Virus record (IMG/VR): IMGVR_UViG_3300003877_000001
Span: 186,001 to 250,000 of that record
Length of the DNA stretch: 64,000 bases
Strand: one strand, 5' to 3'
Numbering within the stretch: the first letter of the stretch is position 1; the number at the start of each line of letters is the position of its first letter. The notes below the pieces were generated by a model. That model was given only the letters and a program-made list of their open reading frames with translations. It was not told the DNA's origin and ran no database searches. The position numbers and the translations under genes were made by a program. Positions 2,762 to 52,855 of this stretch are shown one piece after another.

Positions 2762-3289
2762 ATGGAAAGATTTAATAAAATTTATGAAAATAACCATAGG
2801 ATAGTCTTAGGTTATGTTGCTCAAAAGCTAAATGATTATACATTAGCAGAAGAAATAACCAATGATGTATTCATTAAACTTAGCAAATGTTTAGATTCAT
2901 TCAATGAAGATAAAGCCTCTATGCGAACATGGATCATGACCTTTGCAAAAAATGCTGTTATTGACCAATATAGAAAACGTAATTTGAAAACAATATCTTT
3001 AAATAAAGATTCTGTGGATGGGGAAAACAAATCAATGACCTTGGAGAATAGGATTGTATGTGATATACCAACACCTTACGAAGCATTGAGTTCAAAAGAA
3101 ACTATGTTCAACTTAGATAATGCAATTGCAAATCTAAGTAAGACGGATTTCGATGTTGCTTATTATTTCTTTAAAGAAGAGTTATCTTACGAAGAAATAT
3201 CTAAAACAATGAATATTTCATTAGGTACTGTAAAAGGTAAAATATCGAGAGCAAGAAAATCATTACAAGCTAAATTAGTACACATATAA
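2762..3289 (+). CDS. ECF-type RNA polymerase sigma-70 factor
   Basis: Region 2 (AEEITNDVFIKL...SMRTWIMTFAKNAVIDQYRK) and region 4 HTH (LSYEEISKTMNISLGTVKGKISRARK). Confidence 0.93.
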   Translation: MERFNKIYENNHRIVLGYVAQKLNDYTLAEEITNDVFIKLSKCLDSFNEDKASMRTWIMTFAKNAVIDQYRKRNLKTISLNKDSVDGENKSMTLENRIVCDIPTPYEALSSKETMFNLDNAIANLSKTDFDVAYYFFKEELSYEEISKTMNISLGTVKGKISRARKSLQAKLVHI

Positions 3290-5481: not shown

Positions 5482-5967
5482 ATGGGATATACACATTATT
5501 GGACTTCGAAAGTAGTAAGCGAAGATAAGTTTAAAAAGTTTGCAGCTACTTGTAAGAAATTATATAAAGCATTACCAGATACTAGCGAAACTGCTAGTGG
5601 TTGTTATTCAGATGATGAAATAGTAATTTGTGGTGGTAATGGGAAAGGAAAACCATTGTTCAGAAATGATGAAGTTTGGTTTAACGGAGATGATAAAAGA
5701 GGTCTTGAAGCTTTTTGTATCGAACTAGAGGATAAAGATTATAATTCTTGTAAAACAGAAAGAAAACCCTATGACTTACTAGTTGTAGCCTGCTTAATTG
5801 CAGCACATGAAATTTTAGGGTATGAAATTACAAGTGATGGAGATTTTGAAGATTGGAAACTAGCAATAAATTATTATCTTCGTACATTATATACTAAGAT
5901 GCCAAACGATGAAGCAATTAAATTAATTTTACCAGAATTCATATATAAAGAATATTGTAACCTTTAG
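5482..5967 (+). CDS. Conserved hypothetical phage protein
   Basis: MGYTHYW start, CKTERKPYD motif. Confidence 0.75.
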   Translation: MGYTHYWTSKVVSEDKFKKFAATCKKLYKALPDTSETASGCYSDDEIVICGGNGKGKPLFRNDEVWFNGDDKRGLEAFCIELEDKDYNSCKTERKPYDLLVVACLIAAHEILGYEITSDGDFEDWKLAINYYLRTLYTKMPNDEAIKLILPEFIYKEYCNL

Positions 5968-12111: not shown

Positions 12112-12591
12112 ATGAATAAGATTAACTATGTAACTGGCGATGCTACTAACCCTCAAAGTGACGGCTTTAAAGTAATAGTGCACGTGTGTAATAACATTGG
12201 AGCATGGGGTGCAGGTTTCGTTATGGCACTGAGTAAGAAGTGGGATCAACCTGAACGTGAATATAGAGAGATGAACCACCGTGACTTAGGTATGATCGAT
12301 CTTGTGCAGGTTCAGGACGACATTGCTATATGTAATCTAATAGGTCAAGAAGGGACGATCAAACGTAATGTAACCCGTAACCTTCCACCAGTAAGATACG
12401 TAGCTATTGAGAAGGGTCTTCAAGAACTAGTCGCCATTAATTCTTATAGACATCCTAATGACAAACTATCTGTCCATATGCCAAGGATTGGTTCTGGACT
12501 TGCAGGTGGTAACTGGAAGATCATCGAGACTATCATAGAAGAAACTCTATGTGCAGCAGGTATTGAAGTAACAGTATACGACCTGCCATAG
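12112..12591 (+). CDS. Macro domain protein (Poa1p/DarG-like ADP-ribose processing)
   Basis: GDAT, VHVCNNIGAWGAGF, MPRIGSGLAGGNW. Confidence 0.9.
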   Translation: MNKINYVTGDATNPQSDGFKVIVHVCNNIGAWGAGFVMALSKKWDQPEREYREMNHRDLGMIDLVQVQDDIAICNLIGQEGTIKRNVTRNLPPVRYVAIEKGLQELVAINSYRHPNDKLSVHMPRIGSGLAGGNWKIIETIIEETLCAAGIEVTVYDLP

Positions 12592-12793
12592 GACATCCTA
12601 AATGAAAAACTCTCATGGGTGTGAGAGAATTATAAACTTTTAATTAATAATATTATGATAATAGGATTAATAATATTACTACTACTATCAGGTAAGATAA
12701 TTCATAACCTAATTAAGATTGAAAGAATTCATATAAACATTAAATCAATCATGGAAGAAACTCAAAAAAAAATCAATAACTTTAAATAAAAAT

Positions 12794-13177
12794 ATGACAA
12801 AACCAAATTTAAATATACCTAATCATACTGAAGAGTTAATGAACATCCTTACACTAAGTAAGAAGTCCTATGATAACTATTTATATGATAAGACCCTTGG
12901 ACATGTAACCTCAAGGAAACGTAAAACGTATAAGTATATCTTTGAGACTTATCTCTATGCAGTAGCTGATCTATCACTGAAAGTGAATGCTATCCAGAAA
13001 GACTTAGAGAACCACTACGCTAGGACGTACAAAGACTCACCAGCATTAGGTAATAAACTATACTATGAAGAGTACTTCGATCTACATAAAAAATATGATA
13101 AGGTGAAACGTTTCATCTGGAAAGCAATCTTTAAAATAGATGGAAACGAAAATATCCAACCAGATATTCTTATTTAA
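12794..13177 (+). CDS. Hypothetical protein
   Basis: ORF with A-rich leader. Confidence 0.65.
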   Translation: MTKPNLNIPNHTEELMNILTLSKKSYDNYLYDKTLGHVTSRKRKTYKYIFETYLYAVADLSLKVNAIQKDLENHYARTYKDSPALGNKLYYEEYFDLHKKYDKVKRFIWKAIFKIDGNENIQPDILI

Positions 13178-13202
13178 AAATATTATCTAGTGCGATCTAC
13201 CC

Positions 13203-13232
13203 AACCCCTTGCAGTTAATTTTGTAAGGGGTT
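13203..13232. terminator. Hairpin at end of the + strand gene block
   Basis: AACCCCTTGCA...TGTAAGGGGTT. Confidence 0.55.
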
Positions 13233-13382
13233 CTATTTGTCTACAATGTCCAACCTCATGATCACAATGTACATCATATTGTCCATGATAACATAGGATA
13301 GTCTTAACATTTCATTAACGAATCAATTCGTACCATATTGTATCATTATTAACACATTATTCTCCGCTAATGAAAAAACCCA

Positions 13383-14167
13383 TAGGACATCCTACGGGTT
13401 TAATCATTCCAAACATGCAAGTACGTTTTCGTACAATACAAACATACAAATAAAAAAAGTCATAAGCAAGAGAAGATGGGATTATTATTTTTAACTAAGA
13501 ATGTTAATACTCGTTGCTTACGACTAAGAGTGGACACCTAAAAATAAATACCCACACATTTCAAAACAATCTTAATTAAGGATATTGCTAGGGACATTGA
13601 TGTCCCGAACACCACATTGTCCAATCCATTAGACAACCCACATTGTACACTCTCATAGGATAGCCTACATAGTAATTGCAATAACTATCATAGCAACCAG
13701 TGCTATATAAATTATTGCTTTTCCATAGGATGTCCTAATTTTAGTTCATCATATATAATACATATCCCATACCAAAAACGTAACTCGTTGTTCCTATGGA
13801 ACTTAACTTTAGGATGTCCTAAGTAATTCCCATTATTGGAAGTTCTTTGTCCCATAATGGGACAAGACATGACGAATTTCATGGTCTTAAATTATTAGAG
13901 AATCGGCTTCGGGCATTTCTACCCTTTGTTGAGAAGCAAGTAAATTATTATGTTTATTTAGGTTATCCTAGCCTGACATTTTTAATTAAGAATATATAAT
14001 TTTTTATAAAATCGAGTTTGAAATTTTATAAAAGAGATTTTTAGTACATGTAGCGACCCAAAAGTGGGTGAAAGTGGTAGGATGTGTTTAATTGTGGTGT
14101 AGAATTAAAAATTTTATGTTATTTTGTTGTTTTATTTATATTTAAATACTCTTTTTAGGATGTCCTA
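13383..14167. repeat. Cluster of TAGGA-NN-(T/G)CCTA palindromes in a non-coding region
   Basis: Copies at 13383, 13656, 13726, 13810, 13959 (variant), 14156; also 11495 and 12589 overlapping TAG stop codons. Confidence 0.8.
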
Positions 14168-14270
14168 AAAGGAACAAAACAAAGGTGTTTTTAATAAAAA
14201 TGGAACATGAAAGAACCATAAAAGTACTACTTCATTTCTACATTAGTAGTTGTTAGGTCAGGGTAATTTA

Positions 14271-14693
14271 GTTGTGATCACCTTACAAAATGTGATAATA
14301 ACCAACCTTGTGCTCACGGTGATGTTTTATTTGACTTGTTGTGATCACCTTACAAAATATGATAATAACCAACAGAGTAGGTTTTATTTTGATAAGCAAG
14401 TAAGTTGTGATCACCTTACAAAATATGATAATAACCAACATATTCCTATTGTTATTATTGTTGTGATCACCTTACAAAATGTAATAATAACCAACCTATC
14501 TTATATACCAACATCTCTTGCCGAGGTTGTGACCACCTTACAAAATATAATAATAACCAACTCCAAGAGCCAACATTCGCAACCACGTACTGTTGTGATC
14601 ACCTTACAAAATATGATAATAACCAACGAGGATGTAGAGTTGGATTATTACCGCTTAGTTGTGATCACCTTACAAAATATGATAATAACCAAC
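14271..14693 (-). CRISPR. CRISPR array: 7 x 36-nt repeats, 6 spacers (31, 30, 20, 30, 30, 30 nt)
   Basis: Plus-strand consensus GTTGTGATCACCTTACAAAATATGATAATAACCAAC starting at 14271, 14338, 14404, 14460, 14526, 14592, 14658 with unique spacers; GTTG...CAAC ends; - orientation inferred from the adjacent gene and repeat-family similarity. Confidence 0.97.
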
Positions 14694-14919
14694 ATTATTA
14701 GAGATAAATCACTAATTATGAACAATTTATATTGTGAAATAATATTATAAATTTGTAAGGTTCTACCCCATTATCATATTATCAATCCATTTTCATGTTT
14801 CTAATACTAGAAGCTATATTTTACGTGGATATCACACTACCCAATCGTTAATTTATAATATTCAATAAGTTAAAGAACTTGTTATTACACTACAAATGTA
14901 GGTAAATAAATTGTAAATA
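14694..14919 (-). ncRNA. Candidate leader / tracrRNA-like (omegaRNA-derived) region
   Basis: Contains segments complementary to the repeat at 14752-14761, 14770-14780 and 14816-14836. Confidence 0.4.
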
Positions 14920-16515
14920 TCAAGAGTTTATATATTTATTTTTAATATTAATTGCAGCATTAAAATCTGCATTATCTTCATGACCACATTTAGTACATTT
15001 AAAATTTGATTGATTAGTTCTATTATTAGAATCTATATTACCACAAACAGAACAAGTTTGTGAAGTATATGCAGGATCAATAAGAATTACTTCTTTACCA
15101 AGTTCTTTAGCTTTATATTCTAATTGGGTTTTAATTGTATTCCAACCAATATCTAGTATAACTCTATTAAAGTTCTGTTTAGATTTACTACCTTTAATAG
15201 TCATATTTTTTATATTAAGGTCTTCAAGAACAAAAGTATTATTATTTTTATTTTTGGTAAGTGTTGAAGTTATATTATGTTGTTTATTATTTCTAATATT
15301 AGAAATTTTAGTATTTATTATACCTAATTTATGTTTTATTCTTTTATATGAATTAGTTAAATAAAAATCTATATCTGTTTTATTTTTTTTATAATAGTCA
15401 TATTTTTTATTAAGTATAGTAGATAGTTTTCTTTTTTCTTCAGCATATTTTAATAGAACATCAAATCTATTTGCAAATATTGGATTATTAAAATCATTAA
15501 TATTTGAAGTTGTTATAGGTCTTTCAACACCTAAATCAATTCCAATGGTTGTTTTATCATTAGTGTGTTTAATTGAATAATTTTCAATATTGGTAATTAC
15601 CTGTATAGATATGAAGTATTGATCTTGCGAATTTTTAGATATAGTATAAGAATTTAATTTAAAAACATTAACATCATTCCACATATTAATAAACAATTTA
15701 TTATGACAAACCATTTTAATTTTTTTTAATTTAGGAATATTAATAGTAACGAATTTACTACCATTACTTATTATTTTAAATGGGGAAATATTACCATTAT
15801 AATTATATAGTATTTGACCAGTAAAAGAGTATGTTGAATTTCTATTTTTAAATTTAGGATAACCTGAATGTGTTTTCCATATTTTAGTAAAAGCATTATC
15901 TAAATTTTGTAATGTATATGATCTAGTAGTAGCATCAACATTTTTTAAGAATCCATATTTAAGGATACCATTTTCATTAAGTTCATTAGAGTTAGCCAAT
16001 ACAGTTAGTTCTTTAGATGCTTTATATTTATTAAAATATAAATCATTATCTTTCATATATTTTCTTCTAGCAACACCAATATCCTTAATTAAAGATTTAT
16101 AGTAGAGCATATGATCTATATCACCAGACTCATTAATATATTTAAAGAAAGAAACAATAAGAGTATCTTCAGTATCTAATTCTATTTTATATTTTTTTAA
16201 ATAGTTGTTAAACTCTTTAGAATCATTTAAATACTTATTTGTAAATTCATCTGAAATATCTTGTTGTTGTCTTAGAAAAGTATTATAGATAAAATTAGAG
16301 GTTCTAACAGCATCATCAAAGTATTGTATTTGTTTTTTATTAGGATAAATCCTAAACTTCAAAGCCTTATTTATTTTTTTTAGTTTAAATGATTTAATAT
16401 CATCTAATATAATATTATCATTTGTTAGAGAAGTTCCAATACCCTTTTTATTTACTTTGATAATATTGTGTATTGTGTTATTTTGTAAAGTAACAATATC
16501 ATTAGGTTGTAGCAT
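14920..16515 (-). CDS. tnpB: CRISPR-associated TnpB/Cas12f-like RNA-guided nuclease (531 aa)
   Basis: KALKFRIYPN (HTH_OrfB), GYPKFK, RuvC-I IGIDLG, RuvC-II VLEDL, Zn finger CSVC...CTKC, RuvC-III NADFNAAINI. Confidence 0.9.
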   Translation of the reverse strand: MLQPNDIVTLQNNTIHNIIKVNKKGIGTSLTNDNIILDDIKSFKLKKINKALKFRIYPNKKQIQYFDDAVRTSNFIYNTFLRQQQDISDEFTNKYLNDSKEFNNYLKKYKIELDTEDTLIVSFFKYINESGDIDHMLYYKSLIKDIGVARRKYMKDNDLYFNKYKASKELTVLANSNELNENGILKYGFLKNVDATTRSYTLQNLDNAFTKIWKTHSGYPKFKNRNSTYSFTGQILYNYNGNISPFKIISNGSKFVTINIPKLKKIKMVCHNKLFINMWNDVNVFKLNSYTISKNSQDQYFISIQVITNIENYSIKHTNDKTTIGIDLGVERPITTSNINDFNNPIFANRFDVLLKYAEEKRKLSTILNKKYDYYKKNKTDIDFYLTNSYKRIKHKLGIINTKISNIRNNKQHNITSTLTKNKNNNTFVLEDLNIKNMTIKGSKSKQNFNRVILDIGWNTIKTQLEYKAKELGKEVILIDPAYTSQTCSVCGNIDSNNRTNQSNFKCTKCGHEDNADFNAAINIKNKYINS

Positions 16516-16680
16516 AAATATTTATTTAAAGATTAAAAGACAAATATAGAAATATAAATTGATTAATGCAATAATATTAAACATAATACTTTTCAATTAT
16601 AGTTTCTTAGGTATTATAAATTCTAAGGTAAACTCCAAAATATGTACTATTATATGCTCCCATATTAAAATGTAATAAAC

Positions 16681-31347: not shown

Positions 31348-31983
31348 ATGAAAAAATGTATAACATGTAAGATTCCTAAAATTTTAAATGATTTTCATAA
31401 ATGGAAATTTGGTGCTGATGGTTATAAAAACCAATGTAAATCATGTGTTTTAATTAGACAAAATAAATATAGAGAAAAAAATCGAAATACATTAAATAAA
31501 AAACAAAAAAAATATTATGAATCTCATAAAGAAGAAAAAAAAGAATATGATTTAATTTATAGAAATGAAAATAAAGAAAAAATATCGGAATATCAAAAAA
31601 AATATGGTAAAAAAAATAGAAAGAAATTAAACACATATGCATATAATTATGGTAAAAAATATTCATACATTAAAGCATGGAGAGGTTTATTATATAGATC
31701 ATTAAAAAGAATGGGAAAAGAGAAAAATGGGAATACTATTAATATTTTAGGATATAGTTCTTTAGAATTTAAAAACCATATCGAATCTCAATTCACTGAA
31801 AAAATGACGTGGAATAATTATGGTGAATGGCATATTGATCATATTAAACCGTTAAGTTCTTTTAATAAGGAAACCCATCCATCTATTGTTAACGCATTAT
31901 CGAATATTCAACCATTATGGGCAACCACTAGGGAAATAAATAATATTATTTATGAAGGGAATATAAATAAAGGCACTAAATAA
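31348..31983 (+). CDS. HNH homing endonuclease
   Basis: N-terminal CxxC...CxxC, basic linker, WHIDHIKPL...NIQPLW; opposite strand to neighbours. Confidence 0.85.
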   Translation: MKKCITCKIPKILNDFHKWKFGADGYKNQCKSCVLIRQNKYREKNRNTLNKKQKKYYESHKEEKKEYDLIYRNENKEKISEYQKKYGKKNRKKLNTYAYNYGKKYSYIKAWRGLLYRSLKRMGKEKNGNTINILGYSSLEFKNHIESQFTEKMTWNNYGEWHIDHIKPLSSFNKETHPSIVNALSNIQPLWATTREINNIIYEGNINKGTK

Positions 31984-32542
31984 ATTTACCATTTTTATAT
32001 TTTAATACTCCTTTACTTATTAAAGTTTTTATATAAAATTTATTTGCAGAATTACCATCTTCATTAATTAATTTTTCAATATACTCATTGTGAATTAATT
32101 TTGATTCATTAATTCTTCCAATTGTTAGGTGAAATCCCCAATATGGTTTTGATTCTAATCCTGCTGCTAATCTAATTTTTTCAGCATCATCTGACTTCAC
32201 ACCTACCCACCAATTTTTATTTTTTATTCTAGGATCAACACTATATTCTAAATTAATAATTCTATTATTATATTTCTCTTTTGCGTATTGATATTTTTTA
32301 TTATCTGATACTTTATCATTAATAACTGTAAAGTGTACACCTCTTAATGGTCTTTGTAGTTCAAGATTGTATCTCTTCTTAATAAACCATGAGTAATATG
32401 CACAAAAATCTGGATCGTTTATTAAGACGATAGCAGACTTCTTCCATTCAGATTGTCTTACGTGTTTCTTTGTTAAATCAACAGGGTCAAAGACTATCTT
32501 ACCAGTTTGTTTGAATATATAGTTGTGATAATCATCAGTCAT
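31976..32542 (-). CDS. 2H phosphoesterase superfamily protein (possible Acb1/gp57B-like)
   Basis: Two HxT motifs: GVHFTVI and GFHLTIG. Confidence 0.65.
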   Translation of the reverse strand: MTDDYHNYIFKQTGKIVFDPVDLTKKHVRQSEWKKSAIVLINDPDFCAYYSWFIKKRYNLELQRPLRGVHFTVINDKVSDNKKYQYAKEKYNNRIINLEYSVDPRIKNKNWWVGVKSDDAEKIRLAAGLESKPYWGFHLTIGRINESKLIHNEYIEKLINEDGNSANKFYIKTLISKGVLKYKNGKFI

Positions 32543-36189: not shown

Positions 36190-36858
36190 TTATTTCTCTT
36201 TTAATAAATACTTATTTGAAATAATTTTGAAACTAAAAGAACCATCCATAGCACGATATACAACACCTTCTCTTAGTGTATCATACAGTTCTGATCTACC
36301 ATCAGCATCTTTTAATAAGAAGTCGAAATCATCAGACAATGATACGTTCACATCTAAAACAGGAACAGTTTCTAATTCTAATTCATTAATAATTTCAATG
36401 AATTCATTATAATTAAGTCTCTTATTTTTACCATCTTGTGCAGTAAAGAACCTAATAGTCTTTTCTTTAAGATTATAGATATTACCTTGAATAGATGTTC
36501 CAATTAATTCACCTTGAAGAACTAAATCCTTATCATGTTTAGCACACCATGCTCTCATTTTCTCTTCCAACTTCATATTTCTTGCTGTTGTAACAAATTT
36601 GTTTTCAGATTGAACAAGTTTATTTGTGGTTAATGTATCTGGAACTTCTATTAATAATTTCAATTCAAGATTGCGTGAAGACACACCATAATCCCAAGTA
36701 GAATCAACATTATCCTGTTTAACACAATGTAAGGTAATTGATGAATTATGAACCAAAATATTATTTGCAAAAAAACAATTAGTATCCTCTACTTCTATAT
36801 CATATAAAAGTGAATCATTTTCAATCTCTTCAATTTTACTTATTTTTAACCGTTTCAT
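36190..36858 (-). CDS. Split-intein C-half (38 aa) fused to C-terminal part of RNA ligase
   Basis: MKRLKISKIE...YDIEVED...FFANNILVHN/S, then ligase motifs SSRN, LQGELIG, EGVV, FKIISNKYL. Confidence 0.9.
   Translation of the reverse strand: MKRLKISKIEEIENDSLLYDIEVEDTNCFFANNILVHNSSITLHCVKQDNVDSTWDYGVSSRNLELKLLIEVPDTLTTNKLVQSENKFVTTARNMKLEEKMRAWCAKHDKDLVLQGELIGTSIQGNIYNLKEKTIRFFTAQDGKNKRLNYNEFIEIINELELETVPVLDVNVSLSDDFDFLLKDADGRSELYDTLREGVVYRAMDGSFSFKIISNKYLLKEK
36745..36858 (-). mobile_element. IntC of naturally split intein
   Basis: Blocks F/G ending His-Asn, with Ser+1. Confidence 0.9.
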
Positions 36859-36947
36859 TTAATTTTTCTTTAAATAATTTATATATTGATTTATTTTTAT
36901 TATATTTAATATGATATTGTGGTATAAACTCAAAAGTTGGAAAAAAA

Positions 36948-37727
36948 CTATTCTTTTAATATGAAATCTTTTGTTGTTAATTCATCAGTTCTTCTATAAC
37001 AATTTAATTCTGGAAGCCAAACCATATGATTTCCAGTTAATTTAATTATTGTTCCATCTGATAATGTAAGTTTAAACCATTTTTTCTTTCCTCTTTTTGT
37101 TATTGAATGATTCTTTATCTTTTTATAACAAATTTCGTTTTTTACAATGTTATATGATTTAACATTTAATTCTAATTTTTTTTCACAAATATCTTTAATA
37201 GTTACGTTACCAATATCAGTATTAATTATAGTCTCTTCATCTAAACAACCTTCAAGTTTTTCAGACCTATACACTAATTTTTCTTTCCATTCTGGTAATT
37301 TATCAACCAAATTTTGGATTCTTTCCTCGCCACTTTTAGTACAGAAAGTTGGAAATCTACTTTTAGCACTCATATCTTCAGGAACGGGCGGTTCATATTT
37401 ATACACACCAATAGCTTCTGTTAAATCAGTATCTAATAACAAATTTAAAGGTAACATAAGTCCCTGACTTACAGTCCCTCTCAACTTAATTGTACGGATT
37501 CTAAGGAATCCCCTATCAATATCTTTTTGATTCTTGAATAGGTGATTAGACCAATCTTTATGTGGTATCATTGAGTCTATTTCAAAATAAATTCCCCATT
37601 CCCCTTCTTGGAATTCATCCTTTTTAACGACACATTCCCATCCATCTACTGTCGCTTTTTCGATTTTATCAGCATTAGGAATTGGCGTTAATTTACTTAC
37701 TTTTCTTAATGTTACTAATTTTCTCAT
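36948..37727 (-). CDS. N-terminal part of DRB0094-family RNA ligase fused to split-intein N-half (99 aa)
   Basis: IPNADKIE...GWECVVKK...YFEIDS, LRGTVSQGL, motif I EKLEG, then intein CLDEET...LTGNH. Confidence 0.9.
   Translation of the reverse strand: MRKLVTLRKVSKLTPIPNADKIEKATVDGWECVVKKDEFQEGEWGIYFEIDSMIPHKDWSNHLFKNQKDIDRGFLRIRTIKLRGTVSQGLMLPLNLLLDTDLTEAIGVYKYEPPVPEDMSAKSRFPTFCTKSGEERIQNLVDKLPEWKEKLVYRSEKLEGCLDEETIINTDIGNVTIKDICEKKLELNVKSYNIVKNEICYKKIKNHSITKRGKKKWFKLTLSDGTIIKLTGNHMVWLPELNCYRRTDELTTKDFILKE
36951..37247 (-). mobile_element. IntN of naturally split intein
   Basis: Block A Cys1 (codon 37247-37245) and block B TxxH (TGNH). Confidence 0.9.
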
Positions 37728-46144: not shown

Positions 46145-46969
46145 TTAAAATAAATCTATATTTTTTCTTAAATCTAGATATATTTTAAGATGATCCTTTT
46201 TTTTATTAAAGTCAGCAGCATTACGGATTTTCCACCCATCGACTTTCATAAGATATCTTCCTTGTTTCATAAAGACTCTTTCATCACCCTTTTCTATTAG
46301 TGATTTACCCACATCATTATTAAGACGTTTATCAATTGGTTCTTTAACAACCATTCGACCTCTTTTCTTTCCAGCATCTAAATCATTCCAATTAATACCT
46401 TTCTTCCAAGACATTTCCTGCATTTCATTAGCAGACTTCTTATATAATTCTTTATGTGAATAAAGAGATTGTGCAACCATTGAAATTGAATTTCTTACAG
46501 CATCTTGTTGTCTCGCAATGAAATAATTAATTACTTCAGTTCGTTCTGGTATTGTAAATACTCTTGAATCAAAAAATGCTAGATTATCATTTTTTAGATT
46601 AGGTTTTTTTGCAACAATTCTATTAAAATATCCAGTTGCTATTGATGCTGATATTGAACTCATTTTTTGAATATTACCATCAAACCATGCATCAGTAGAT
46701 AATTTATCATAATCTTGTAAAACTAAACTAATTTCATCTGATTGAACATATGCCATAACCGCACCTTGAATATTTTTACATAGTTCAAGTGCTGTTTCGT
46801 CCATAACTTCCATTAAATTACTATCAAACGGTTTTTCAAAGTTTTTAGTATAAGTATGAAAACTTTTCCCATCACAACGTATGATAGTATTAGTTCTTCT
46901 TGGAAGATAGTATCTTGTTCTATCTTCATAATTAACTTTCATTCTATTATTTATACTATCTTTTTTCAT
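46145..46969 (-). CDS. thg1: tRNA(His) guanylyltransferase Thg1-like protein (3'-5' polymerase)
   Basis: IIRCDGKSFH, PFD, YVQSDEISL, FDGNIQK, FDSRVF, RQQDAVRNSI. Confidence 0.93.
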   Translation of the reverse strand: MKKDSINNRMKVNYEDRTRYYLPRRTNTIIRCDGKSFHTYTKNFEKPFDSNLMEVMDETALELCKNIQGAVMAYVQSDEISLVLQDYDKLSTDAWFDGNIQKMSSISASIATGYFNRIVAKKPNLKNDNLAFFDSRVFTIPERTEVINYFIARQQDAVRNSISMVAQSLYSHKELYKKSANEMQEMSWKKGINWNDLDAGKKRGRMVVKEPIDKRLNNDVGKSLIEKGDERVFMKQGRYLMKVDGWKIRNAADFNKKKDHLKIYLDLRKNIDLF

Positions 46970-47256
46970 ATTTTCTATTTAAATAAATTTTACTTTCAAA
47001 ATATATGTGATCCAATACTTTATTGGCATTTTTACCTTGAAGGAACTACCATTATATAAATGTATCATACTACAATATACGTTTAGGATATCCTAAAGGT
47101 TACAAAACAACTTTTAATATTTTACTTCCATTAGAATTTAGACTTAAATCAAATTCTTTATAAATTCCATTCATTAAGATAAGCCAACAAAGGATCATTA
47201 ATATTTAAAATATCATCACAATTTTTTATTGGTTTAATGTATAAAGGAGATTCCAT

Positions 47257-47481
47257 TTATACAATTCTTTGAAATTCACCAGTAACTAGTACTAATATAT
47301 TGTCTGGTAAGTTTTGTTCTTTAATTGATTGATTGATTAATGCACTTACATATGTATCGGAAAACATTTCACCTACATTCATATGATCTCTGTCATTAAC
47401 TTCAAATAATACTTTAGATGTATCATTACCATCTAAAAATTTCACATTTAATCTTGGTAGTGCTTTTTTATATTTACCCAT
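47257..47481 (-). CDS. Hypothetical protein
   Basis: ORF in run. Confidence 0.65.
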   Translation of the reverse strand: MGKYKKALPRLNVKFLDGNDTSKVLFEVNDRDHMNVGEMFSDTYVSALINQSIKEQNLPDNILVLVTGEFQRIV

Positions 47482-47758
47482 TTTCTTGTTCGTTTAATTG
47501 TTCTTTATAATTATCAAAAGATTCTTGTACATTAACAGATTTCCATAGGACTGCCGTAATTTTAATTAAAAGTACTAAACCTGTAATATCTATGTAATTT
47601 AATACAGGTGCACCAAATTTAGTTACAAATGTAAAATTATAAATTAATAATACAGGTAATCCAAATATTATTGAATCAAACAGTATTGATACTAATATTG
47701 TTACATATGTAATTGCCATTGTTAATGCTTGTGTAATCATTCCGAATACATGTCTCAT
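47474..47758 (-). CDS. Membrane protein
   Basis: Hydrophobic helices. Confidence 0.65.
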   Translation of the reverse strand: MRHVFGMITQALTMAITYVTILVSILFDSIIFGLPVLLIYNFTFVTKFGAPVLNYIDITGLVLLIKITAVLWKSVNVQESFDNYKEQLNEQENG

Positions 47759-48300
47759 AATTTTCTTTTATTTAATACTTTTAATATTTTTTCCTTTATT
47801 CCTGTTTGTTTAATTCCTTCAAAATCACCTCTAGAACAATGAACAAAATTATCATAGTCAATTACGCCAGTATCATTCCAATCTTTATATGATCTTATAT
47901 CTAAATCATCAATAATAACATAATGTTCAAATTCATTAGGATGGTATGCAATATATTCATCAATTGAATATCCTCTATTGGTTGAATTATGTGTTGACAT
48001 CTTCAATGCTAATTGTTTAACCATATCGTATGGTGATTTAATCAAACCATTATGTTTGAAAATATCATCCATTTGTTCTAATGTATAATATAGTGACCAA
48101 TCAGATGAAAGTATAATTTCAGCATCTGTTTCTTCAATAATTTCATTTAAGATTTTTACACATTTTTCATCATAAGGATAAACATTATATTCACTTAAAT
48201 AATAGAGTGAAGATTTTTTAGTTCTATATTGTTTATGGGTTGCTAGAACACCATCAATATCTAAAAAGATCACTTTTTCTTTCATAATACAATGATACAA
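47755..48300 (-). CDS. HAD-superfamily phosphatase (Swiss Army Knife RNA repair-like)
   Basis: IFLDIDGVL, IILSSDW, YVIIDD. Confidence 0.82.
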   Translation of the reverse strand: MYHCIMKEKVIFLDIDGVLATHKQYRTKKSSLYYLSEYNVYPYDEKCVKILNEIIEETDAEIILSSDWSLYYTLEQMDDIFKHNGLIKSPYDMVKQLALKMSTHNSTNRGYSIDEYIAYHPNEFEHYVIIDDLDIRSYKDWNDTGVIDYDNFVHCSRGDFEGIKQTGIKEKILKVLNKRKL

Positions 48301-50175: not shown

Positions 50176-50790
50176 TTAATATTTTTTTCTCATTACTCTT
50201 ACAACATCCCATGCATCTAGCAATGCATTATGAGTTACTTCATCAGTGATTTGTGCTCTTTCTAAGCAAGTATTTAATGATGGTATTTCCATATCGTGTT
50301 CAAAATCTATATATAAATTAGCTGGATCAATAGTTCTATGTCCAAAATCTATATATTTTTTTAAGTTAGGTAATTTTTCTAAAAATTGTTTATCAAATGC
50401 ACCGAAGTTTTTACCTGCTACAATAATTTTAATTTGACCATTATCTGCTTTATATCCGTTTGATTCTAAAAAACAATAAAATGATAATGCAAAATCTTGA
50501 GGTAATATGATATTATGTTTTTTTAAATAATTACTTTTTTGTTGAAAAGTATCACCATCAATATGTTTTGGGATTTTTGCTAAAATTTCTAAAATTCTTG
50601 TATTTAGACTTAATGCATATGCACTACCCGATATTCTATTATAATTAAGAATTGCTTTGTATTTTGGTATTTCATCAAAATCTAGTTGTTTATCAGTATC
50701 TTCGATAACTGCCGCAATTTCTAATATTCGATCATTTTCACTATCTAAACCACTTGTTTCGATATCAATACTTAAATATTTAAGTCCCAT
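50176..50790 (-). CDS. DEDD-family 3'-5' exonuclease (DnaQ-like)
   Basis: SIDIETSG, AGKNFGAFD, HNALLDA. Confidence 0.88.
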   Translation of the reverse strand: MGLKYLSIDIETSGLDSENDRILEIAAVIEDTDKQLDFDEIPKYKAILNYNRISGSAYALSLNTRILEILAKIPKHIDGDTFQQKSNYLKKHNIILPQDFALSFYCFLESNGYKADNGQIKIIVAGKNFGAFDKQFLEKLPNLKKYIDFGHRTIDPANLYIDFEHDMEIPSLNTCLERAQITDEVTHNALLDAWDVVRVMRKKY

Positions 50791-50889
50791 TTTTTATTTT
50801 TATTAAAGTTAATATATTAATTTTTGATGCAAATATAATAAATCAATTCTAAAGTTACAAGTTATTTAAAATTTTATTTTTAGCAATTT

Positions 50890-50921
<32 letters not shown>

Positions 50922-50968
50922 GGTATGAAATAATTTAAAAATCAATAGAATAATATTTCATTACTAGT

Positions 50969-51652
50969 TTAGAGCTTATCATATTCAAATTTTTTTAGTT
51001 CTAAATTCAATTTCTGTATTTTGTCTAATCTATCTAGTCGATATCTAGAAATTATATATTTTAATTTATATGAGTATCTTGGATCAGTAGCGTATCCATG
51101 TGAAACAATCGTATCTATCCAATCAAGGTAGTTATCACCTTTAACACCATAGTTCTTTATAATTGCAAAATGCCTTTCAAAGGCATGTTTTTGTGATTTA
51201 ATAAATTGAAATTCGGACTTTATGACGACATATTTACCGTTAATATATTCTTTAGTCTTCGATCTTATTCCCTTACCTTTTATACCAAAAATATTATGTT
51301 TTAATTTATTAGACGTGCCATATCCTGTTTCAATTGCAGCTTGTGAAATTGATATTGATGGTAATGATTTAGCATCTAATGCACCACACATTAAATTCTC
51401 CATAAATTTTTTAGTGAAAGAGGGTCTTGTTATAGTATCTAAATTTAAGTAGAATAATTTATATTCTTCTTCAATTGATTTATTTAAGGTATTTAACTTT
51501 TTTCTATATTCTAAATTTTTAGTCATTTCAGAAAATCTATTATATATTTCAATTGAAATTTCACCTGATACATCTACACCTGATGTCGTAACATGATGTG
51601 GATCTATCATTAAAAATAATATAAGAAATATTATATATATGTTTTTTTTCAT
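50969..51652 (-). CDS. Glucosaminidase/muramidase (GH73, FlgJ-like) with N-terminal TM anchor
   Basis: SQAAIETGYG, HNIFGIKG, GYATDPRY. Confidence 0.88.
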   Translation of the reverse strand: MKKNIYIIFLILFLMIDPHHVTTSGVDVSGEISIEIYNRFSEMTKNLEYRKKLNTLNKSIEEEYKLFYLNLDTITRPSFTKKFMENLMCGALDAKSLPSISISQAAIETGYGTSNKLKHNIFGIKGKGIRSKTKEYINGKYVVIKSEFQFIKSQKHAFERHFAIIKNYGVKGDNYLDWIDTIVSHGYATDPRYSYKLKYIISRYRLDRLDKIQKLNLELKKFEYDKL

Positions 51653-51775
51653 ACACTATGTGTTTACGTAAAATTAAATAAAATTATTACAAAGTTAAGA
51701 CAATTTAATTAGATTCACCATCTTTTTTATAAATTCTTTAATTTCATGTGAATCAACAAATATTGTGTAAGGTGA

Positions 51776-51797
51776 ATATATATATATATATATATAT
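51776..51797. repeat. (AT)11 microsatellite
   Basis: Direct reading. Confidence 0.9.
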
Positions 51798-51916
51798 TGA
51801 ACCCAATACACTGAAAAATATTAATGTTGTTGTTACTGAGAGAAGTAAACTAGCATAGGGCATTAGTAAATTTTTATTTACTAATTCACCGTCATTGTTT
51901 TCTACACCATCATAAT

Positions 51917-52855
51917 TTATTTTTTAGCTTCAAATCTTAATATTCTATTTTCATCGAATGCTGTATTATATCCTTCTTCCCACCATTCTTTCATTTGTTT
52001 TTTATTAAATATCATTGCATTGTTAGATAATTTTCTTGGTAAAAAATATATATTAGTTGTTGTATTTCTTCTATGTGCAAAATATTTTGCTTTCTCAATT
52101 AAATACTCGAATTCAATATCATATCTCATTGCATCAATACTTCTATTTAAATTATCTATTAACGTATATGCATCTCCAACATCATAATTTGGTGTTGGCT
52201 TTATTTTATGTACAATCACATCAATCTCCTTTGCTCCCATTTTAAATACTTCATCCATTGCAACTAATTCGGTTAATCCACCATCAGTCCATTGACCCAT
52301 ATGTGTATTTCCATTTTCATCTGTCCATTCTTTATTACCTAAAGAAGTGTAAAAAGGTGCAGAAGCAGATGCCCACATCCAATCTTTAAAGTCTTCAAAT
52401 GTACTTTTTTGAACATCAAAATAATGTATTTTAGATGGTTTTTCTCTTAAATTTTGAGCACCAACAATAACAATTTTACCTTCATCAATTAATCTATCAT
52501 AATGTTCTTGTTTTACAAAAGCATCAATTGTTTTTCTCATTGCATTAGTTGTAGCTAATGAATTTTTTTTAAACATTAATGAATATATAACTGCAAAAAT
52601 ATTTACCTTACCCTTTTTTGTAATAGGTTTTGGTCTATACCATTTGTGATCAAATATATTTTTATCATTAACAGATGTATAGGCTTCTCTTAAAGCATCA
52701 TGTTCACCTAATGCAGCTAATGGTGACATCATAGCACCAGTAGATATACCTGCAACAATGTCATATTTTTTATCTAATCGTGCAAGTGTACCTACACCAA
52801 ATGCTCCCCATGCACCACCAGTGCTAAGAACTAAACCCTTTTTCACATCAGTCAT
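51917..52855 (-). CDS. Patatin-like phospholipase
   Basis: GGAWGAF glycine-rich loop, GISTG nucleophile elbow, DGG motif. Confidence 0.9.
   Translation of the reverse strand: MTDVKKGLVLSTGGAWGAFGVGTLARLDKKYDIVAGISTGAMMSPLAALGEHDALREAYTSVNDKNIFDHKWYRPKPITKKGKVNIFAVIYSLMFKKNSLATTNAMRKTIDAFVKQEHYDRLIDEGKIVIVGAQNLREKPSKIHYFDVQKSTFEDFKDWMWASASAPFYTSLGNKEWTDENGNTHMGQWTDGGLTELVAMDEVFKMGAKEIDVIVHKIKPTPNYDVGDAYTLIDNLNRSIDAMRYDIEFEYLIEKAKYFAHRRNTTTNIYFLPRKLSNNAMIFNKKQMKEWWEEGYNTAFDENRILRFEAKK

Follow-up and report, generated by a model that had tools for sequence, protein, structure and literature searches.

A 64,000-nt stretch of IMG/VR contig 3300003877_000001 (325,854 bp), referred to below as the window, carries what is probably an adaptation-less, TnpB-like type V (V-U/TranC-like) CRISPR-Cas cassette in a jumbo phage. 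The cassette comprises a gene for a TnpB-like RuvC nuclease (the effector), a non-coding region read here as a putative trans-activating CRISPR RNA (tracrRNA), and a CRISPR array (Table 1). Judged by comparative sequence analysis, its parts occur together again in related phages that form a rare group, and the cassette is not the chance neighbor of a mobile gene. The source is a jumbo phage, as shown by its genes for rIIA, rIIB, a tail fibre, an endolysin, and RNA repair. A preliminary description of the window had pointed to a 531-amino-acid (aa) TnpB-family open reading frame (ORF) with a zinc finger and the D/E/D active site, followed 226 nt past its stop codon by seven 36-nt repeats on the same strand, and all of its coordinates were right. 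The 226 nt are non-coding, and the first repeat begins at nt 227.

The strongest evidence that gene and array belong together is their conserved pairing. A homolog search of 5.8 billion proteins returned 22 relatives at E values of 1e-68 or lower, 38 to 49% identical to the window protein by BLASTP and mostly 430 to 440 aa long, followed by a gap after which ordinary TnpBs begin at E values of 1e-35 or higher. Together with the window protein, these 23 sequences are monophyletic (Shimodaira-Hasegawa-like approximate likelihood ratio test [SH-aLRT], 98). The loci compared were the DNA around twelve clade relatives and two IMG/VR relatives, one of which (L010) lies on a 640-kb contig and is only 31% identical. 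All nine relatives that could be assessed (L005, L006, L009, L007, L168, L170, L171, L172, and L010, with L006 and L009 the same downstream) have one or more 36-nt repeats on the gene strand, 165 to 265 nt after the stop codon. Eight of the nine have a full array with a 66-nt period, and the ninth, L170, has a single repeat (positions 5586 to 5621) beside an effector that retains its catalytic residues. The other five contigs (L169 and L173 to L176) end in or just after the first repeat, where assemblers break. Repeat sequences vary by locus, although nearly all end in ACAAC, and the clade arrays other than L170 contain 4 to 12 repeats.

Only one of about 240 other TnpB loci examined as background had an array of its own kind, so that the link between effector and array, an expected property of a type V system, is conserved in 9/9 relatives versus roughly 1/240 background loci. 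Three further background loci (L127, L129, and L179) have arrays with short G+C-rich repeats that we take to be type I-like, and an apparent array at L089 proved to be a coding 63-nt protein repeat. At L094:2320-2807, a TnpB relative at 27% identity has its own 37-nt-repeat array about 160 nt after the gene, which is probably another V-U-type lineage. The possibility that close homologs would be array-less insertion sequence TnpBs, raised beforehand as the key check on the cassette, thus turned out the opposite way: every assessable close homolog has a repeat or array of its own, on the gene strand and in the equivalent position. The suggestion that the system had possibly evolved recently is not supported, as the link between gene and array is older than the divergence of a clade of 38 to 49% identity and extends to L010.

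The clade is rare and, as far as the data reach, confined to phage-like contigs. No member was found in 185,579 species genomes (one genome per species), where the top match was 28% identical and the best identity was 33% over a partial match, or in 50,697 GenBank phage records, where the best matches were 24 to 28% identical. Scans of metagenomes and genomes returned only ordinary TnpBs at 24 to 33% identity (one partial match reached 39%) and no new members. Among 1.84 billion representatives clustered at 50% identity, only about a dozen proteins scored below 1e-45.

A second line of evidence comes from the RNA between gene and array. The 165 to 265 nt past the stop codon can be aligned across 13 to 14 loci and show a constant order of elements. 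In 11 of 14 loci, the first 70 nt past the stop codon contain a TAnnTTTG box (in the window, TACATTTG), compared to 5.7% expected. The box is followed by a conserved GTTCTTTGA, a hairpin, a conserved GAA, a stretch of 9 to 10 nt, and a T-run. TAnnTTTG, which we take to be the -7 promoter consensus of Bacteroidota, is no more frequent in the window than expected (119 occurrences versus 122), so the motif carries weight only through its conserved position after the stop codon. From this promoter motif alone one might guess at a Bacteroidota host.

Two segments of this RNA are predicted to pair with the repeat of the same locus. The 5-bp stem of the conserved hairpin is 98% paired across loci, with compensatory changes, and the helix formed between its loop and the repeat is also 98% paired, with changes on both sides at three of five pairs in the MAFFT alignment. 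In a hand-made register, 59 of 60 cells in the loop-repeat helix are paired and four of five pairs show both-sided changes. Across loci, the 9- to 10-nt stretch directly after GAA complements nt 17 to 26 of each locus's own repeat. These anti-repeat duplexes average -7.6 kcal/mol for cognate partners versus -4.2 kcal/mol for non-cognate partners (0 of 100,000 permutations as extreme), and inner pairs 1 to 6 are present in 69 of 72 cells, double changes (GC, CG, TA, and AT exchanges) being frequent. The window has the best pairing of the set, with a perfect 9-bp anti-repeat and a 6-bp pseudoknot. Only the site-specific anti-repeat test separates cognate from non-cognate partners; when the repeat was paired with all 200 nt downstream, which are AU rich, the duplex energies did not.

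Taken as a whole, the structure is 82% paired in the unedited MAFFT alignment, compared to 72% in shuffled alignments and 38 to 52% with slid partners, and its covariation score of 0.376 (0.193 in shuffles) was reached in 0 of 500 shuffles. A covariance model trained without L010 recovered the L010 copy directly after its stop codon, and the same model had no match in 1.5 Mb around approximately 190 ordinary TnpB genes. An Rfam scan of the window between positions 12 and 18 kb had no match. A tracrRNA-dependent type V system of V-F-like architecture is expected to encode, between its effector and its array, a non-coding RNA whose anti-repeat changes in step with the repeat; the conserved region has this property and is accordingly labeled a putative tracrRNA. 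The coupling of a TnpB to CRISPR, which was the core of the preliminary description, is supported by this conserved RNA that pairs with each locus's own repeat. By comparison with known guide RNAs, the two contacts would restore the 3′ portion of a TnpB omegaRNA together with its pseudoknot.

In L006 and L009 (L006:7489-7541), the T-run is followed by a partial repeat that matches the 3′ end of the full repeat at 10 of 12 positions and lies exactly 30 nt before repeat 1 (P < 0.001). A relic "repeat 0" of this kind was considered for every leader; it was significant in L006/L009 only and not at other loci, the window included.

The effector protein has the domain order and residues expected of the TnpB superfamily: a helix-turn-helix/WED N terminus, a split RuvC D/E/D site, a zinc-ribbon TNB domain, and a predicted TnpB fold. 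Pfam models place HTH_OrfB_IS605 at residues 49 to 86, a weak OrfB_IS605 match, and Cas12f1-like_TNB at residues 458 to 524. The NCBIfam guided_TnpB model scores 213 bits, above its cutoff of 100, while the curated thresholds for IS200_TnpB, IS607_TnpB, Cas12f2, and C2c8 are not reached. The catalytic residues D327, E431, and D517 and the two CxxC pairs (C488/C491 and C507/C510) are invariant across the 23 clade members. An AlphaFold2 model has a mean predicted local distance difference test (pLDDT) score of 81.5, with residues 1 to 43 disordered. The nearest solved folds found by Foldseek are the TnpBs of ISFba1 and ISDra2, followed by Cas12f, Cas12p, and LaTranC, all at 12 to 20% identity; by sequence, most solved structures align only over the C-terminal RuvC/zinc-ribbon part. 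The unusual length that had been reported for this protein was confirmed against its relatives of 430 to 440 aa; 47 aa are added at the N terminus, and about 50 aa (roughly residues 103 to 152), modeled at low confidence, are inserted in a helical REC-like region.

The N-terminal extension contains a degenerate inverted copy of the repeat, the top inverted match to the repeat in the window, at borderline significance. This copy gives the effector mRNA complementarity to repeat nt 15 to 26, and no similar inverted copy was found at homolog loci. The promoter proposed earlier for the effector gene is present as a sequence, TATATTTG, 25 nt before the ATG. Given the window-wide frequency of TAnnTTTG, this lone site is not above chance and is no evidence by itself; a -7 box occurs at the effector-promoter position in 5 of 14 loci, making it a plausible candidate.

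The array itself is well preserved. Five of seven repeats are identical, with mismatches in copies 3, 4, and 7 as numbered from the gene, and the spacers measure 30, 30, 30, 20, 30, and 31 nt. Tandem Repeats Finder did not list the array, as expected for spacers that are mutually unrelated. Arrays of the homologs end in a degenerate repeat on the gene-distal side, which fits a leader at the gene side. The short spacer in the window (14440 to 14459) has counterparts in L005, L171, and L010, where one mid-array spacer measures 18 to 20 nt; at all four sites the period is 54 to 56 rather than the usual 66, and in at least L171 and L010 the repeat after the short spacer is also changed at its 5′ end. 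A 166-aa ORF at 14250 to 14750 on the plus strand was rejected as a gene because it is an artefact of array repeats read in frame.

The context of the cassette is that of a phage genome and not a transposon. The window contains rIIA/rIIB, tail fibre, and endolysin genes, the IMG/VR contigs are 321 to 640 kb long, and Klebsiella T4-like phages supply the closest rIIA of any cultured phage, at 30% identity. As the preliminary description had reported for tnpA, cas1, cas2, and cas4, no Cas1, Cas2, Cas4, Cas13, or TnpA was found among the 31 other window ORFs of at least 150 aa, for each of which one or more of Pfam, PHROGs, and PADLOC were searched, or by Pfam among eight small ORFs adjoining the locus; the scan covered ORFs below 150 aa only next to the locus. 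The window has no second copy of the effector gene. In five loci the effector starts 2 to 4 nt past the upstream phage ORF, and in most others within 60 nt, leaving little or no space for a transposon left end. With no tnpA among the scanned ORFs, a single copy, and an array instead of one omegaRNA that takes its guide from the flank, the locus does not have the makeup of a transposon-borne IS200/IS605 element.

The cassette sits at different places in related phages. A trio of patatin, glucosaminidase, and RNase_T genes starts 2.4 kb from the effector stop codon in L005 (L005:9664-13299), whereas in the window (50176 to 52855) about 35 kb separate this trio from the cassette. Genes for RNR and VWA proteins flank the cassette in L006, L173, and L176, and HNH, LAGLIDADG, and intein genes are found close by.

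Approximately 50 independent origins of CRISPR systems from TnpB have been recorded, some in phages, with more expected (PMC10691335, PMC12669027, bioRxiv 10.1101/2025.01.20.633832), and phage-borne examples include Cas12p, caudovirus TranC9, CasPhi, and CasLambda. The proposed route is a splitting of the transposon RNA into tracrRNA and CRISPR RNA (crRNA) (bioRxiv 10.64898/2026.03.27.714800), and a two-contact repeat-tracrRNA architecture with a pseudoknot has been reported for TnpB, Cas12f, and Cas12p (bioRxiv 10.1101/2025.01.20.633832). The window locus resembles IS200/IS605 TnpBs in its nearest folds (8IAZ and 8H1J, with a template modeling score of 0.66 on the target), in its best family score (guided_TnpB) and domain order, and in having an RNA downstream of the gene whose scaffold ends 3′ in a pseudoknot just before the guide. 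It differs from them in that neither a transposase nor transposon ends nor further copies turned up, in that the guide RNA is split into a putative tracrRNA and an array of exchangeable guides, and in that its 180 bits on the IS200_TnpB equivalog model stay below the cutoff of 425, with about 19% identity. The V-U* candidate systems and TranC, the latter named for intermediates between transposon and CRISPR, likewise have a TnpB-sized effector (430 to 530 aa), a downstream array, no adaptation genes, and a tracrRNA and crRNA apparently derived from a split transposon RNA (PMC10691335; bioRxiv 10.64898/2026.03.27.714800). In L006/L009 a partial repeat and a 30-nt guide remain attached behind the tracrRNA, which fits this splitting model and is suggestive of TranC, whose effectors use both a crRNA with tracrRNA and a one-piece RNA of transposon origin. 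LaTranC itself aligns only over the C-terminal 130 residues of the effector (E = 1e-8).

Similarities to Cas12f (V-F) and Cas12n (V-U4) include miniature size, a predicted dependence on a tracrRNA, and repeat-tracrRNA pairing in two segments, and the top PADLOC models are Cas12u4 (135 bits) and Cas12f (124 bits). However, the NCBIfam Cas12f2 model gives 94 bits where 450 are required, structural alignments with solved Cas12f, a family that acts as an asymmetric homodimer on one guide, show 16 to 18% identity, and most sequence matches are C-terminal only. The C2c8 (V-U2) model is not reached either, at 84 bits against a cutoff of 350. The Cas12p "hacker" system has a 185-nt tracrRNA, a 37-nt repeat with a 3′-end pseudoknot to the tracrRNA, a GTN protospacer-adjacent motif, and activation by thioredoxin, which binds an insert in REC of the 12 known proteins; the system has been described as an early intermediate between TnpB and Cas12 (bioRxiv 10.1101/2025.01.20.633832). 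Like the window cassette, Cas12p is phage borne and lacks an adaptation module, but the two proteins are 12 to 14% identical in structural alignments (Foldseek ranks 13 and 21), and phmmer found no match between the effector and Cas12p 9JFS at an E value of 0.01 or lower. By these sequence and structure tests, the cassette is a new lineage of the known miniature type V class, distinct from Cas12f and C2c8, and probably from Cas12p, to which its similarity is at the level of the fold only, in a comparison that stops short of the unnamed V-U6-45 and TranC clades.

Targets were found for spacers of two relatives, and all of them lie in the effector gene of the same locus. Spacer 5 of L010 matches its own intact effector gene perfectly, spacer 3 of L010 matches the same gene with one mismatch, and spacer 2 of L005 has two mismatches to the final codons of the L005 effector gene. 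Each of the three protospacers is preceded directly 5′ by ATATTA or ATATTT on the strand identical to the spacer, a motif (ATATTW) that occurs at a frequency of 0.0045 to 0.0078 per position. Type V and TnpB systems read an adjacent motif at the 5′ side, and ATATTW is a candidate for such a motif in these two relatives. Its presence at the protospacers argues for a DNA target and for motif-dependent selection of spacers. A perfect self-match in a phage could possibly reflect rivalry among related phages, self-regulation, or an assembly merged from two strains. The arrays of L007 and L171 gave only chance-level BLAST matches to GenBank phages.

These observations can be combined into a mechanism. 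The phage would make three parts: the TnpB-like RuvC nuclease, a tracrRNA of about 130 to 170 nt from its own promoter just past the stop codon, and a precursor crRNA transcribed from the array of seven repeats. Each repeat would use its 3′ half to dock on the tracrRNA twice, through nt 17 to 26 with the anti-repeat at the tracrRNA 3′ end and through nt 30 to 34 with the hairpin loop in a pseudoknot, rebuilding from two molecules the scaffold that a TnpB omegaRNA has as one piece. The 20 to 30 nt following each repeat would serve as the guide, and the complex would locate DNA next to a 5′ motif (candidate ATATTW) for cutting by RuvC, with use against rival phages in a shared host being the most likely purpose. 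Gene, conserved catalytic residues, array, conserved synteny, and repeat-tracrRNA covariation are directly observed, while transcription, processing, DNA cleavage, the adjacent motif (from two relatives only), and biological role are what we infer. A more far-reaching reading, offered tentatively and judged rather doubtful, is that the clade both preserves successive stages of the omegaRNA split and aims motif-bearing spacers at the effector gene. The stages may be represented by the fused partial repeat and guide of L006/L009, the single repeat of L170, and the arrays of 4 to 12 repeats elsewhere.

Several results weigh against an active type V cassette in the window. Exact 22- to 24-mers of window spacers 1, 2, 3, 5, and 6 occur in IMG/VR only in the array itself, the window spacers have no significant BLAST match in GenBank phages, and none matches the window with up to 5 mismatches; the earlier proposal that the system is used against competing phages or host DNA thus finds no target among these spacers. 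The candidate adjacent motif comes from three sites in two relatives only. The effector is atypical in its clade, with its disordered 47-aa extension and low-confidence insertion, and the gene has no canonical start codon at the position usual for the clade. For the RNA, the single-sequence fold of the window tracrRNA region is no better than shuffled sequence (z = -1.2), and RNAalifold on the tracrRNA alignment yields only the pseudoknot hairpin.

Some of these points would be explained if the cassette in this particular phage were a decaying relic, whose normal start codon was replaced when the 5′ end rearranged and whose protein or array has lost its function. No relative shares the N-terminal extension, which is predicted to be disordered and includes an inverted fragment resembling the array repeat, one spacer is down to 20 nt, and no spacer targets were found. 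Against decay, the ORF is intact over 531 codons with all catalytic residues kept, five of seven repeats are identical, and the anti-repeat and pseudoknot are the best of the set, making a relic quite improbable. It is unlikely, though less so, that the cassette guides binding and not destruction, as in the silencing or autoregulation known from Cas12m and the Cas9 long tracrRNA, with spacers matching its own effector gene. The three self-matches in L010 and L005, including a perfect one on an intact gene with the candidate motif adjoining, and the complementarity between the 5′ end of the window effector mRNA and the repeat all suit such a role. Yet the clade shows no variation at the three RuvC residues or in the zinc finger, unlike the binding-only Cas12m and Cas12k, the window spacers do not match the window, and the self-matches could stem from merged two-strain assemblies.

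Selfish spread, in which the cassette chiefly cuts co-infecting relatives and is copied in by repair, comparable to the way TnpB helps its transposon to be retained and homing endonucleases spread, has a slightly smaller chance of being correct than guided binding. The differing neighborhoods of the cassette in related phages, the RNR and VWA genes at its flanks, the relatives' spacers that match the effector gene itself, and the nearby HNH, LAGLIDADG, and intein genes speak for such an element. Neither an empty-site allele nor a flank-matching spacer was seen, and arrays of several unrelated spacers are easier to reconcile with defence or competition than with homing to one site. The least credible alternative, close to refuted, is an ordinary IS200/IS605 TnpB beside an unrelated array, such as one borrowing a host Cas protein. 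The protein is formally of the TnpB family, and the repeat (GTTG...CAAC) with its 30-nt spacers is superficially type VI-B-like. However, the repeats vary by locus while their position is constant, and they covary with an RNA beside the TnpB-like gene; the lack of tnpA among the scanned ORFs, of a second copy in the window, and of Cas13 or any other Cas match in the large ORFs, the close spacing to upstream phage ORFs, and the absence of the clade from the 185,579 cellular genomes also speak against it. An orphan array served by a host effector (e.g., type VI-B) was rejected on similar grounds, as the putative cognate tracrRNA lies in cis and repeats differ between related phages. A TnpB-like type V cassette remains the probable reading of the locus.

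Table 1. Features of the cassette and of matching loci (window coordinates unless a locus is given)
Feature	Position	Strand	Description
Effector gene	14920..16515	-	531-aa TnpB-like RuvC nuclease with zinc finger
CRISPR array	14271..14693	-	7 repeats of 36 nt and 6 spacers
Repeats of the array	14658-93, 14592-627, 14526-61, 14460-95, 14404-39, 14338-73, 14271-306	-	
Putative tracrRNA core	14747..14878	-	Conserved GTTCTTT to T-run; aligned across 13-14 loci
-7 box of putative tracrRNA promoter	14893..14900	-	TACATTTG, 20 nt after stop codon
Conserved hairpin	14827..14842	-	Loop TGTGAT (14831-14836) pairs with repeat nt 30-34, pseudoknot helix
Anti-repeat	14752..14760	-	CCTTACAAA; pairs with repeat nt 18-26
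Leader, T-run to first repeat	14694..14746	-	Poorly conserved
Candidate -7 box (TAnnTTTG), effector promoter	16541..16548	-	TATATTTG, 25 nt before ATG
Degenerate inverted repeat copy	16465..16500	-	Codons 6-17 of N-terminal extension; 24/36 matches
Self-matching protospacers	L010:5738-5767, L010:5968-5987, L005:7276-7305		0, 1, and 2 mismatches

Other features of the window were recorded during the analysis. A palindromic 12-mer, TAGGNNNNCCTA, is present in 19 copies versus 0.33 expected between 5408 and 47095, and is dense at 12589 to 14167. Copies at 5965, 11495, and 12589 start exactly on the TAG stop codon of a plus-strand ORF, and six lie in the ORF-poor interval 13383 to 14167, just past the far end of the array. 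The 12-mer is probably a phage regulatory or terminator motif. The window also encodes an RNA ligase that is apparently split by an intein, an extracytoplasmic function (ECF)-type sigma factor, and RNA-repair genes (Thg1-like, HAD-SAK, and 2H-SAK), this set being located at 36190 to 37727, 2762 to 3289, 46145 to 48300, and 31976 to 32542.

That TnpB became Cas12 many times, in phages as well, is a principle already known, and to these independent transitions the locus adds a well-supported lineage restricted to phages. The guide-RNA architecture of this lineage (promoter, pseudoknot loop, and anti-repeat) can be read directly from comparative data. Most members combine a length of only 430 to 440 aa with an active site that is intact, which makes them realistic miniature-editor candidates, and with a predicted tracrRNA and a candidate 5′ motif available, clade members can be tested immediately. 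The self-matching spacers in two relatives pose a concrete question, namely, what phage-borne CRISPR systems aim at. If spacers are truly aimed at the effector gene, phages would be disarming each other's CRISPR weapon, or the nuclease would be regulating its own gene.

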